From positions 62,001-126,000 of the forward strand of contig NIVC01000459.1 of NCBI GenBank assembly GCA_002269645.1: a stretch of DNA of 64,000 nt, given 5' to 3'. This document shows, piece after piece, positions 50,301 through 56,300 of this stretch (its first letter is position 1; every line of letters begins with the position of its first letter). A program made the position numbers and the translations under genes. This stretch comes from Macrostomum lignano (Eukaryota). The notes under the pieces were generated by a model. That model worked only from the letters and a program-made list of their open reading frames with translations. It made no database searches and was not told where the DNA came from.

Positions 50301-53300
50301 GAGGATCTGGTAGGCTGGCCCAGCAACTGAGGATCTGGGAGGCTGGCCCAGCAACTGAGGATCTGGTAGGCTGGCCCAGCAACTGAGGGTCTGGGAGGCT
50401 GGCCCAGCAACTGAGGATCTGGGAGGCTGGCCCAGCAACTGACACTCTGGGAGGCTGGCCCAGCAACTGAGGATCTGGTAGGCTGGCCCAGCAACTGAGG
50501 ATCTGGGAGGCTGGCCCAGCAACTGACACTCTGGGAGGCTGGCCCAGCAACTAAGGATCTGGTAGGCTGGCCCAGCAACTGAGGATCTGGGAGGCTGGCC
50601 CAGCAACTGACACTCTGGGAGGCTGGCCCAGCAACTGAGGATCTGGTAGGCTGGCCCAGCAACTGAGGATCTGGGAGGCTGGCCCAGCAACTGACACTCT
50701 GGGAGGCTGGCCCAGCAACTGAGGATCTGGTAGGCTGGCCCAGCAACTGAGGATCTGGGATGCTGGCCCAGCAACTGAGGATCTGGGAGGCTGGCCCAGC
50801 AACTGAGGATCTGGTAGGCTGGCCCAGCAACTGAGGATCTGGTAGGCTGGCCCAGCAACTGAGGATCTGGGGAGGCGGTGGCCACCCAAGGATCCCACTT
50901 TCTGTGCAAAGCGATGCGGCTAAGCAAACACGGTACTAGCAGGGGGTGGTCGATAGCATGAATGAGTACACGCAGGAGTGTTACACGGACACAGAACTAA
51001 ATAGACAATTAATGGGGCAAAGCGACAGACAGACCGCAACGAACGCAGAGTTGACATGAAATTAAAACAGCCAATTTCTCCGACTCCAAAAGGTTAAAAA
51101 TGCGTGAGTGAATTCACGTCCAGATTTGATTCTTTAAATCGATCAATAAAAGAATTGATTTTCAACCTCAATACACAATAAGCGCTAACTACTGTTGAAA
51201 GTAGTGCACGCTAATTTATAGCACAACAGACTGACGCTACACCTCGTATCGGACACAATTAAGGCACAATAAAAGCGGGCACAAACTGCAGGCCCCGACA
51301 TGCTCCCAGCATACCAATTTTTTAGACTTTATCTTCCATCACCGCTCCTATACGGGCTCAAGTTAATCTATAAGTTTGGTCAGCCTATGCAAAGTAAGTA
51401 TACCAGTAGTTAAACTGGGGAGATGCCTAGTTTTGAGGGTGGGTCGCCACACCTCAGCTAATGCTGGCACCCATTTTACAGGTGAGTGAACTGAAGCAGT
51501 GCAGATTCAAGTGTCTTGCTCAAGGACACAACTTGTTCCGAGTAGGCCGAGATTCGAACCCCCGACCTTTCAGTCGTGAGCCCAACGCTCAAACCTCTAG
51601 GCTACAATCCATATACTCACTAAAAATGAATTGGCACTGCCAGTCTCTCAATTTAATAAAAAAATTTCGCCACAATTTGAGCCACATGGGACAAAAAACT
51701 GTCTTTGAGATTGGGAAAAAGCACACAGAAGTTGCACAAAATGAGAATTAATTGGGGCGAGAGGGAGAGCGCCTTACTGAGCGCCAGATGGCGGGCAATC
51801 TTTGCTTTGCACCGCTCCCTGTAGTCAATCTGACAGGCGTTGTACTCGTTCATTACTTCAACAAATTTTCGCGACAGGGTGGCGTGCTGCAAACAATGAC
51901 AATAAAGTAATCGATAATATTGCAGATTAATCAATCAAAACTAACGGTTGCCGCGTGTGCGTGATGAGTTCGTGGGGAGTTGTTGGGGAAGAATAATCAC
52001 TGCAGTTTAATTAATCAACCAAAAACAAACTGATTGGAGAAAGGAATTTGGCAAACTGTCAGACGCGTGCAGTGTGGCAAACCCGATGCAGTTAAAAAGT
52101 TGACTAAAAAATGACACTAGAAGTAAAATTCTTGTCTTTTTTGGCATGCAATTTTTCGTGTCTAATGGCTCTTAAAATCATTCCCTCAAATGAGATTAGT
52201 TAACAACGATACCAAGTCAATTTCTATAAAAAAATAACTAGCTACTAATAAGTAATAGAAGACAGATATTTGAAGGTACGAATACAGAATAGTGCTACAA
52301 CTGTGTGAGAGATTACTAAAACAGAGCTATAACTACTGTAATTTTTAAGTATTGTTTTGTCAGTGTGGTTGATGCTGGTAATTGGGCCATAGAAAAGCTC
52401 GCAGACGCAGTCATGTGATGAGTTTTTAGAGGCAGGGCCTGTGTGCACCCTGGCGCACTTCAAGCGACATTGTCACACAACCGGCGAGAGGCATTACTGC
52501 CCATTCCGCCGACTCCCCTGAGCAGGCATACAAGCACGCGGATACGTACGCAGGCACACACTCACATAGAAGTGTACAGCGGCCCTAACTTTATTTATCG
52601 TTAGGCATGTACACTTCACTGCGCCTTGGGGGTTGGCCTTTAAGGGCGTTAATTGCACGAGCAGAGCCAATTTAGCCCCAAATCAATGTGACTGCACTTG
52701 GAATCGAGCCTGAGCCCCTCCCCCCCGTTCTGTCGCAGTGGAGTAGGGATTCTACCAACTTAACTACAATTCGTATAATATAGCATTTTTCAAGCCAATT
52801 GAACCTAGGAGCAAGCAATCTAATCCTTAGTGGAAGAATCAAGCTATTATTGAAGACTTGCTTTTCATTGTCTATGGCCCGAAAGGGGGGTCTATGGAGC
52901 AACTAATTTGAAAATTTGGGCGCGCTATTAATCCTTTCCACAGTTGTGCAAGCCTCAGACCATAGAAAATAACATATTTTATTAGAGAAACATGGATATG
53001 GTTCTGCTACAGCCCAAGATGCAGTGGATGAGCAGAATCCTGCAGGGCAAGAACCCTATCGCAAGATAAGCAACGAAAAGTACGACCTGATTGTCGCTGC
53101 CATCGAGAGAGGTGGTAGTGCTGAGCACATTTCGCGATGGCTGGTCGTAAAGAGAAAAACAGTGTATTCTATCAGGCGTCGCTATGAAATCACGGGCCTG
53201 TTTTGATTGGTTTCTCTGAAATGTGCTAATTTCATTCGTTTTTTGATATGCATCTATTTGCAGACGTTATTTCAGTGAAGTGAATGAAAGACAAGTCTTC

Positions 53301-56300
53301 AATAGCTTGATTTTCCCACTAAGGATAAATTGCCCGCTCCTAGGCTCAATTGGCTTGAAAAATGCTATATTACCTTCACTGACAGAAGCAATATTTATAG
53401 ATATTTTTTTCATTACTTCTATCGCTTTGGAACATAGACATCTTCCTTCTCTCGGATGTCTATAGCTCAATCCTATCTTTGTCGCAGGGCATTCCATTTC
53501 TTTGAAAATTTAGATTTACAAGAAGCCTCTTCCTTGACTCTAGCACTCTATAGAATCATAATCTAGATATTCCTAATAATAATACAATAACTACTGAGCT
53601 CAGGTACAGAATCGAGAGTTCATCAGACTCTAGTAAAATGAATTATTTTTATAATAAATAAATAAACTACGCAATCCGAGAGAGAAATCTATTGAAACAA
53701 AAGGCGTAATAAATAAATTATATATTTAAGAAAATATTGCTAAACACTGCCGTGCGTGCATATTGATTTATTATTGTCAGATGATAATCGCTATAAAGTT
53801 GCAAAAAAGCATATATAAATAAATCTAAGAACGATTTTTTCGTCAGCAAAGTGAATATATTGAATTACCAATCTCCATTTGCCTCTTAATTCTACCCTTG
53901 CAGGCGTCGCGATAGTCAATCTGAGCCTTGTTATAGTCACTCATCACCTCTATGAACTTGCGCGATATTGTTGAGTACTGCAAATACAAGTGCCCAAGTT
54001 ATTAATGCGATTATCTACCTATTGGTGTAACTATACTTAAGCACAATGTACACTTATTCAAGTGAGCAAAAGCATTTTTTTCATATACTAGCATCATCAT
54101 CAATAAAGTTGCATGTACATACTACTTATAGTATTTGATATAGTATTTTAATAAGCAATAAACATTTTGCACATGTTTTTTTAAACCACCTGACACAGAA
54201 TATACGGTATGAGCCTTAAATCTATAACAACAGATACACAAACCGCGCTGTGACCAAAGTATAGAACAAGACAATGTAGATTTAATGAAACATGCCATTG
54301 CTATAAGCTGATTATGACTATGACATGGTGGCAGAGAAGAGAGGCAGATCAGGGGAGAGAAGAGAGGCGGAGAAGGGGGGGAAGAGAGCGGAGTAAGGAG
54401 AAGAGAGGCGGAGAAGAGGGAGGAGAGGCGGAGAAGGGGGAGAAGAGAGGCGGAGAAGAAGGGAGAAGAGGCGGAGAAGGGGAGAAGAGAGGAGGGGAAA
54501 GGGGAGAAGGGAGGCGGAAAAGGGGGAGAAGAGAGGCGGAGAAGGTGGAGAAGAGGCGGGGAAGGGGAGAAGAGAGGCGGAAGAGGGAGAAGAGAGGCGG
54601 GGAAGGTGGAGAAGAGAGCCGGAAAAGGAGGAGAAGAGAGGCGGAGAAGGGGGAGGATAGAGGCGGAGAAGGGGGAGAATAGAGGCGGGGAAAGGGGAGA
54701 AGAGAGGCAGGGAAGGGGAAGAGAGGCGGAGAAGGGGGAGAAGAGAGGCGGAGAAGGGGAAGAAGAGAGGCAGAGAAGGGGGAGAAGAGAGGCGGAGAAG
54801 GGGGAGAAGAGAGGCGGAAAAGGGGAGAAGAGAGGCGGAGAAGGGGAGAAGAGAGGCGGAGAAGGGGGAGAATAGAGGCGGGGAAAGGGGAGAAGAGAGG
54901 CGGGGAAGGGGAAGAGAGGCGGAGAAGGGGGAGAAGAGAGGCGGAGAAGGGGGAGAAGAGAGGCGGAGAAGGGGGAGAAGAGAGGCGGAGAAGGGGGAGA
55001 AGAGAGGCGGAGAAGGGGGAGAATAGAGGCGGGGAAAGGGGAGAAGAGAGGCGGAAGAGGGAGAAGAGAGGCGGAGAAGGTGGAGAAGAGAGCCGGAAAA
55101 GGAGGAGAAGAGAGGCGGAGAATATAGTCCTCAGATAAAACACGAAAAGGCACACTGTGGATAGAAGAGGAATAGTCAGAGTAAATTACCAGAGTGAGAA
55201 AAGTGGGCCGCCGAGAAGAGATGGTAAAAATGGAACGGGGCCGCTCAACACACAAATGGAAAGAAAGATAAGGAAGATTTTGAAAGAGCAGCAAGCAGCA
55301 GGTGGACAGACGGTGCCATAAATAATTAGAGTCGCAGCGAGCAGCAGGAGCAGACGGAATAAATCAATATTTTAGACATTTGTCTAGTCTGAATCCCAGC
55401 TAGTTTTTGCATACTGCCGACTTGACTAAAAATATCTTTGACATTTATCGATGATGGTTAACTTGCTCTTTGTCAGCGAGTATCGCGACTTCATGCTGTG
55501 CAGCCAAAGCCCTACTTATTGACAGTAGAACTGCGATTGCCTTGACAAAATATTCTAGGAATCGAGGGGCAGACAGCAGAAAAGATTCACAGACGGGGAG
55601 AAGAGAGGCAGAGGGGGAGAAGAGAGGCAGAGGGGGAGAAGAGAGGCAGAGAGAGGCAGAGAGAGGGAGAAGAGAGGCAGAGAGAGGGAGAAGAGAGGCA
55701 GAGAGAGGGAGAAGAGAGGCAGAGAGAGGGAGAAGAGAGGCAGGGGGAGAAGAGGGGCAGAGAAAGGGAGAAGAGAGGCAGGGGGAGAAGAGGGGCAGAG
55801 AAAGGGAGAAGAGAGGCAGAGGGGGGACAAGAGGGGCAGAGAAAGGGAGAAGAGAGGCAGGGGGAGAAGAGGGGCAGAGAAAGGGAGAAGAGAGGCAGAG
55901 GGGGAGAAGAGAGGCAGAGGGGGAGAAGAGAGGCAGAGGGGGAGAAGAGAGGCAGAGAGACGGAGAAGAGAGGCAGAGAGGGAGAAGAGAGGCAGAGGTA
56001 AAAGAGAGACAGAGAGAGGTAAAGAGAGGCAGAGAAAGGGAGGAGAGGCAGAGGTAAAAGAGAGACAGAGAGAGGTAAAGAGAGGCAGAGAAAGGGAGGA
56101 GAGGCAGAGGTAAAAGAGAGACAGAGAGAGGTAAAGAGAGGCAGAGAAAGGGAGGAGAGGCAGAGGTAAAAGAGAGACAGAGAGAGGTAAAGAGAGGCAG
56201 AGAAAGGGAGGAGAGGCAGAGGTAAAAGAGAGACAGAGAGAGGTAAAGAGAGGCAGAGAAAGGGAGGAGAGGCAGAGGGGGGAGAAGAGAGGCAGACAAG

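Follow-up and report, generated by a model that had tools for sequence, protein, structure and literature searches.

In the 64,000-nucleotide stretch of DNA from the flatworm Macrostomum lignano analyzed here (contig NIVC01000459.1, positions 62,001 to 126,000; referred to below as the window, whose own numbering is used throughout), the minus strand carries the 3′ two-thirds of a syntaxin-1 gene in which one segment of the protein is encoded twice, by two tandem exons that we denote A and B. Exon anatomy, reading-frame logic, the orthology of A and B across phyla and the use of one or the other exon in other species are together best explained by a mutually exclusive pair of exons for the helix Hc, a reading that we regard as probable. 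That is, A and B would be an ancient tandem duplication of which each productive mRNA receives one copy.

Protein searches identified the gene as BOX15_Mlig016078g1. Its annotated product (PAA92647.1, P0122, 308 amino acids), which has precomputed matches to the Pfam families PF00804 and PF05739, has the sequence of the window exons joined through exon A and the first of two membrane-anchor exons; exon A is the only member of the pair in the GenBank annotation of BOX15_Mlig016078. A 167-residue segment from the window matches rat Syntaxin-1A chains with E = 8e-76, and by sequence the gene is assigned to syntaxin-1, i.e., a secretory Qa-SNARE with a Habc domain, a Qa SNARE motif and a membrane anchor. 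When the window was compared by tblastn with human STX1A, syntaxin-1 matches were obtained on the minus strand at 63055-62972, 53980-53870, 51907-51749, 45786-45700, 45030-44893 and 44809-44699, together with a weak match to the membrane anchor at 41403-41323. No third copy of the Hc exon was found by this search in the window, beyond A and B.

Both exons lie within one intron, between the exon that ends at 62984 and the exon that starts at 45776. The initial annotation had described them as exons of exactly 109 nt, each running from phase 0 to phase 1 between canonical splice sites, and the minus-strand reading confirms this, with both peptides as quoted there. Exon A (53869-53977, minus strand) is the A-type Hc exon present in the annotated M. 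lignano protein; its boundaries are tttgcag/TACTCAACA...GAGATTG/gtaattc and its first codon is TAC. Exon B (51778-51886, minus strand) is a B-type Hc exon that occurs in no annotated M. lignano protein; its boundaries are tttgcag/CACGCCACC...GCGCTCA/gtaaggc and its first codon is CAC. Judged from the sequence, each exon follows a polypyrimidine tract and a CAG acceptor, and the donors are G/GTAATT for A and A/GTAAGG for B, so both have ordinary GT-AG sites.

The constitutive exon upstream (62984-63057, minus strand; 74 nt, phase 1 to 0) encodes the end of the Hb-Hc loop and the start of Hc, is identical to PAA92647.1, and ends at 62984 in phase 0 with CAG/gtaaat. The initial annotation had placed this junction correctly; the extent of the exon is corrected here to 63057-62984. 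The constitutive downstream exon (45703-45776, minus strand; 74 nt, phase 1 to 0) encodes part of the linker region and begins after the acceptor ttttag/CC GGA. The codon split by this junction is GCC, for Ala, when exon A precedes it and ACC, for Thr, when exon B does. Either exon alone leaves an open frame that continues through the SNARE motif. The length of 109 nt does not divide by three, so mRNAs with both exons or with neither would be shifted into early stops: joint inclusion leads to a stop 14 codons into exon B, and joint skipping to a stop 31 codons past the junction, which bears out the earlier claim that both or neither would shift the frame. Such mRNAs would presumably be cleared by nonsense-mediated decay.

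Within the window, A and B encode 36 residues each, of which 19 are identical and 17 differ. To what extent this reflects two distinct types became apparent when 185 homologues were sorted by the segment corresponding to the Hc exon: they fall into two sharply separate types. The A type follows the pattern YSTISRKF[IV]E.M..YN..Q.DYR..CK.RI.RQMEI, and four columns separate A from B without exception, namely, in rat Stx1A numbering, 120 (Y in A, H in B), 123 (I or L, respectively), 137 (A or T in A, C in B) and 153 (M or L, respectively). Window exon A has Y, I, A and M at these positions, and window exon B has H, L, C and L. The window A segment is identical at 27-33 of 36 positions to the A exons of Lineus, Lingula, Mizuhopecten, Mya, Haliotis, Octopus, Loligo and Schistosoma, and the window B segment at 27-30 of 36 to the B exons of molluscs, a brachiopod and a nemertean. 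Agreement at this level with counterparts in other phyla is not a chance similarity, and the earlier description of the two exons as paralogous versions of one segment stands.

The same arrangement, i.e., A followed by B in one gene, with 109 nt each, the same phase and AG/GT boundaries, was found in the scallop Mizuhopecten (L003; exon A at 56328, exon B at 56869), the brachiopod Lingula (L009, LFEI02000153.1; 20962 and 21345) and the annelid Owenia (L011; 47667 and 48215). The annotated proteins of the latter two (P0125 and P0024, respectively) are B-type, and exon A is unannotated in both. RefSeq isoforms that share identical flanks and carry exactly one type are found in Lineus longissimus, Octopus, Mizuhopecten, Argopecten/Pecten and Mya, and transcript-sized contigs show the same alternation between identical flanks (P0007/P0076 and the squid-like P0021/P0059-60). 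For Lineus and Octopus, the assignment of the isoforms to one gene rests on the identity of the flanking protein sequence; the Octopus gene spans about 300 kb. The claim that these are mutually exclusive tandem exons of syntaxin-1 thus gains strong support from the recurrence of the pair in three other phyla and from the one-or-other isoforms elsewhere. In the Lingula sequence, two identical copies of the A/B block are present between 19875 and 23404 (exon A at 20962 and again at 22913, exon B at 21345 and again at 23296), and the two exons upstream of it are also doubled, at a distance of about 5.6 kb (14271/19875 and 14852/20460). Either a segmental duplication happened recently here, or the assembly is at fault.

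Since A and B each match their own counterparts across at least five phyla, the duplication is placed by these comparisons before the split of flatworms, molluscs, annelids, brachiopods and nemerteans. By the same sequence evidence, the pair is lophotrochozoan-wide, not specific to the flatworm lineage, and its age is in the hundreds of millions of years. Toward dating, the sole genome-level check outside Lophotrochozoa was Daphnia, in which one B-like segment only is present, joined to the upstream exon; the insect and vertebrate proteins among the homologues are B-like only. A separate homologue search with a 59-residue exon-A peptide returned 5 fragments only and was uninformative on taxonomic spread.

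Several syntaxin-1 copies exist in M. lignano (P0121, P0122, P0152 and P0191-P0195), and the genome is rich in repeats. Both facts would fit an artefact in which two paralogous syntaxin loci or haplotypes were merged into one scaffold; the collapse of paralogous loci had been named as an alternative in the initial annotation. We consider the probability of this artefact negligible. The GenBank locus that encodes PAA92647.1 (L001, NIVC01000042.1; below, the second locus) has A followed by B as well, each with 0 of 109 nt different from the window, and the introns around them are 92-97.5% identical to those of the window, with large changes in repeat length. The window is thus another haplotype, homeologue or assembly of that locus, and because the pair recurs in an independent sequence with differing introns, it is no accident of assembly. 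A-then-B also occurs in single genes of the three other phyla. Furthermore, a true paralogue (P0121, Mlig011532; locus L002, NIVC01002116.1, 14471-18677) differs from the window in exon A at 17 of 109 nt, and no paralogous M. lignano locus with a B-type exon was found.

This paralogue has exon A only. Its 17 differences from window exon A are all synonymous, with none non-synonymous (proportion of synonymous differences, pS, 0.86; proportion of non-synonymous differences, pN, 0), and no remnant of exon B was found in the corresponding intron by tblastn at E up to 1000 or by blastn-short. Window exon B, compared with the B exons of scallop or Lingula, gives pN 0.13-0.15 versus pS 0.70. Its frame of 36 codons and its splice sites are intact, and over its first 27 residues it agrees with the B consensus at 26. 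Of its deviations from that consensus, 6 of 7 fall within the last 10 residues (consensus KGRIQRQLEI), a clustering that is not the pattern of uniform neutral decay. The sequences indicate strong purifying selection on both exons, with very tight constraint on A over a long period; on M. lignano B, selection may have relaxed recently. Neutral decay since the paralogues split would have erased exon B, as it did in the paralogue; we conclude from the sequence that exon B was probably functional for most or all of that time.

Several observations nevertheless weigh against a working pair in this species. No other B exon seen diverges as far as that of M. lignano, in which residue I155 is replaced by L. 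The identity of exon B between the window and the second locus is weak evidence of constraint, as at 2.5% divergence about 6% of 109-nt stretches evolving neutrally would show no difference. Only exon A was found in Schistosoma (L004); in the monogenean Cichlidogyrus (L012), exon A is fused to the downstream exons and there is no B; and all 21 parasitic-flatworm proteins among the homologues are A-type. By this distribution, exon B has been lost at least twice among flatworms, and its absence from the M. lignano paralogue, Schistosoma and the monogenean implies that it is dispensable in flatworm lineages. Within flatworms, exon B thus tends to be lost. Lastly, two homologue searches recovered no M. 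lignano protein or transcript with exon B alone, and present-day use of exon B in this species is accordingly presumed. Exact look-ups of constructed isoforms, namely B with either anchor and A with the second anchor, gave no match; this is a weak negative, because the collection holds only annotation-derived M. lignano proteins.

These observations could mean that exon B is a relic in M. lignano, not spliced in or spliced in only as noise, and heading for loss, such that the gene effectively makes the A isoform alone. The annotation and the recorded proteins, the absence of B from the three flatworm loci named above, and the seven deviations from the B consensus, which include the otherwise near-invariant RIQRQLEI stretch, would all fit such a state. 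We nonetheless judge it unlikely. The exon retains an open frame with a canonical acceptor and donor, and the B donor is nearer to the consensus than that of A. The first 27 residues stay at the cross-phylum consensus although synonymous sites are saturated; over a span in which the paralogues reached their level of synonymous divergence, a neutral exon would have become unrecognizable, as in the paralogue; and exon B shows no differences between the window and the second locus.

Three transcript contigs (L006-L008: P0094; Logan SRR3745356 and ERR15316848; JGI 3300019149) combine a B-type exon with flatworm-like downstream sequence. The B exon of P0094 ends in KGKIKRHLEI, and the unusual motif K.KI.RHL is common to it and to M. 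lignano exon B. P0094 was not counted as flatworm evidence.

One further M. lignano model bears on exclusivity. The UniRef entry A0A1I8GNI9 (P0002), an automatic prediction on an older assembly, runs from exon A, in frame, into the interior of exon B (RIKRQMEI/VMNEYNACQ), which taken literally would mean that both exons are used together by way of a non-canonical internal splice. This is very improbable: the product would contain 26 residues of Hc twice over and have a disrupted Habc bundle, no such product occurs in other species among the 185 homologues, and the later GenBank model takes A alone. The join from A to mid-B is a prediction artefact, one that arose because of the exon pair. Another M. 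lignano protein, P0192 (Mlig007127g1, 146 amino acids), reads ...LRIRKTQ/LAGTSRTKTWRT and appears to be a model in which the Hc exon is left out and a frameshifted stop is reached.

If A and B are mutually exclusive, how is the choice made? Considerations of minimum intron length rule out steric exclusion across the intron between the two exons (51887-53868, minus strand), which measures 1982 nt. Selection of A or B by trans-acting splicing factors is the most likely mechanism, and these factors would presumably be specific to cell type. An inverted-repeat scan of 51300-54600 found only repeats resembling a miniature inverted-repeat transposable element (MITE) and weak pairs of at most 83% complementarity; a conserved competing RNA structure, or another mechanism of exclusivity, was not found in this region, which is a further point against the proposed pair. 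As docking/selector pairs of the Dscam type, both the MITE-like repeats and the weak pairs, which the second locus does not share, were rejected; one weak pairing, of 51919-51941 with 53200-53222, lies in a segment absent from that locus.

The MITE-like element occupies 52776-53372 of the A-B intron and has terminal inverted repeats of about 95 nt (52776-52869 and 53283-53372) that are about 91% complementary. Inside it is a segment of 281 nt (53282-53002), in whose place 44 nt stand in the second locus. Purine-rich satellites of the plus strand, with units of about 19-22 nt (GAGAAGAGAGGCGGAGAAGGGG), extend over 54334-56296; on the sense strand, this CU-rich satellite of about 1.9 kb ends about 350 nt upstream of exon A, and it is present in the second locus. 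That it could bind PTB-like factors is pure speculation. As a PTB-type silencer it was set aside, since it is absent from the scallop, Lingula and paralogue introns, and it is treated as an unrelated repeat.

As to what the swapped segment does, the exon aligns with residues 120-155 of rat Stx1A, i.e., the C-terminal 36 residues of helix Hc. In the Munc18-1/syntaxin-1a complex, Hc extends to about residue 156 and is followed by the linker, 157-189 (PMC10895456), in agreement with the earlier assignment of the segment to Hc. In the closed form, the L165/E166 linker helix is kept in place by contacts with R142 and K146 of Hc (PMC10895456), and R151 and I155 constitute the 'RI' sequence that is bound by the MUN domain of Munc13-1 to open syntaxin (PMC8728020). 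The positions of R142, C145, K146, R151 and I155 are all inside the swapped exon. Both M. lignano exons keep R142, C145, K146 and R151, and position 155 is Leu in B; the 17 positions at which A and B differ surround these retained residues.

It is plausible, from the location of these differences, that the A and B isoforms differ functionally, with the closed/open equilibrium or the binding of Sec1/Munc18 (SM) proteins being tuned. This idea, put forward in the initial annotation, is a reasonable one, and we infer that it can be sharpened to Munc13-driven opening. Most likely, the gene would encode two syntaxin-1 variants with different closed-state stability or different opening driven by Munc18 and Munc13. 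The broader proposal, that the Hc pair is a regulated switch between functionally distinct proteins, likely more than 500 million years old and common to flatworms, molluscs, annelids, brachiopods and nemerteans, is one that we advance tentatively. If it is correct, the differences between the isoforms would surround the RI motif, where Munc13 binds, and the face of Hc on which the linker docks, and closed-state stability or priming kinetics could vary by neuron or secretory cell type.

The closest known counterparts are the RefSeq syntaxin pairs, i.e., isoforms X2/X1 of Mizuhopecten yessoensis, those of Argopecten/Pecten, X5 versus X2/X6 of Lineus longissimus, and those of Octopus and Mya arenaria, which are orthologous to the window pair. 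They share with it the length of 109 nt, the phase (0 to 1) and the position of A upstream of B in one intron. M. lignano differs in that only A is annotated and the 3′ end of exon B has diverged; in its A-B intron, which is about 2 kb compared with 0.27-0.55 kb in the other species; and in the lack of B from its paralogue and from all parasitic flatworms examined. The initial annotation knew of no description of such an arrangement for the Hc exon in this lineage. Indeed, no paper on the syntaxin Hc exon pair was found in the literature searched, where C-terminal anchor splicing was the only kind found for syntaxin-1; yet the pair is not peculiar to this lineage, and it already exists as isoforms in the public annotation of other phyla. 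It is therefore annotated in molluscs and a nemertean and apparently unpublished.

Two other systems invite comparison. Exons 5a and 5b of SNAP-25 are likewise a tandem, mutually exclusive pair in a neuronal t-SNARE, differing by few residues and regulated by development or cell type (PMC2581893), and the duplication of exon 5 has been attributed to higher vertebrates (PMC2581893). SNAP-25 is, however, a different and non-homologous protein, and the syntaxin pair alters the autoinhibitory Habc domain instead. Closer by family are C. elegans unc-64, with exons 8a/8b, and mammalian Stx2, which have alternative C-terminal membrane-anchor exons under cell-type regulation (PMC4946901); these are 3′-terminal exons that change the anchor, whereas those described here are internal, frame-locked Hc exons. 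With regard to structures, the Hc of squid s-syntaxin (Loligo pealei; PDB 1S94, Habc domain) is A-type and identical to window exon A at 31 of 36 positions, so that a solved structure of an A-type Hc exists; the name of that entry gives no sign that a second isoform exists. A B-like Hc is seen in the structures of rat Stx1A (3C98, 4JEU and others), the protein on which most structural work has been done.

The remainder of the gene in the window was delineated by tblastn and by reading of the DNA. Following the linker exon, the N-terminal half of the SNARE motif is encoded at 44893-45030 and its C-terminal half at 44699-44809, both on the minus strand. Two candidate terminal coding exons, each with a membrane anchor and a stop, come next on the same strand: variant 1 (43656-43748), which is used in PAA92647.1, and variant 2 (41305-41388), a candidate alternative. 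A TTGCAG acceptor precedes each; GenBank annotates variant 1, and the exon equivalent to variant 2 is the one used by the paralogue P0121. Two candidate anchor exons are in keeping with unc-64 and Stx2, whose anchors are known to be spliced alternatively, and with Lineus, which has many anchor isoforms.

A second tandem duplication was noted in other species, in the exon for the C-terminal half of the SNARE motif (...KYQSKARR). Owenia has two copies (L011, 50984-51094 and 51156-51266), and the duplication is also found in Lineus isoforms, in a Pinctada model with both copies and in several arthropod models (sequences P0001; P0030-P0034; P0146, P0151, P0153, P0180 and P0011). The window has one copy only of this exon.

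Tandem repeats crowd the introns of the gene; their units measure 22-130 nt and recur up to 48 times, and copy numbers differ between the window and GenBank. A satellite of 28-nt units (GAGGATCTGGGAGGCTGGCCCAGCAACT) in about 158 copies (46447-50876) fills most of the intron after exon B; the second locus holds only about 0.5 kb of it, and this difference in copy number accounts for an intron of 6.0 kb in the window versus 2.05 kb there. Further tandem-repeat tracts in introns are at 41816-42610, 44181-44597, 45140-45625, 59092-60301, 61769-62833 and 63198-63610.

Munc18 and Munc13 open syntaxin-1, and this step gates the priming of synaptic vesicles. The feature described here is real and deeply conserved, and it lies in a part of the fusion machinery that is central to its mechanism; it is not confined to this lineage, and mechanistically it has precedents. 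Because the closed-state residues R142 and K146 and the residues gripped by Munc13, R151 and I155, share one exon, the either/or versions of that exon would be variants of this gate tested by evolution. Biochemical comparison of these versions, and their assignment to cell types, would be feasible in tractable animals, among them squid, Aplysia and its relatives, scallop, Platynereis-like annelids and Macrostomum. The classic invertebrate syntaxins themselves differ in type: squid 1S94 is A-type, the Hirudo cDNA O01390 is A-like, and the Lymnaea protein model is B-type. For annotation, the finding means that gene predictors mishandle the pair, as in the chimeric UniRef model of M. lignano and the unannotated exon A of Lingula and Owenia. 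For flatworm biology, it shows a lineage-specific simplification of a synaptic gene in parasites. If the pair is indeed an ancient switch, flatworms would constitute a natural experiment, in which B has been dropped independently in parasites and in one M. lignano paralogue, and kept with a remodelled 3′ end in the other.

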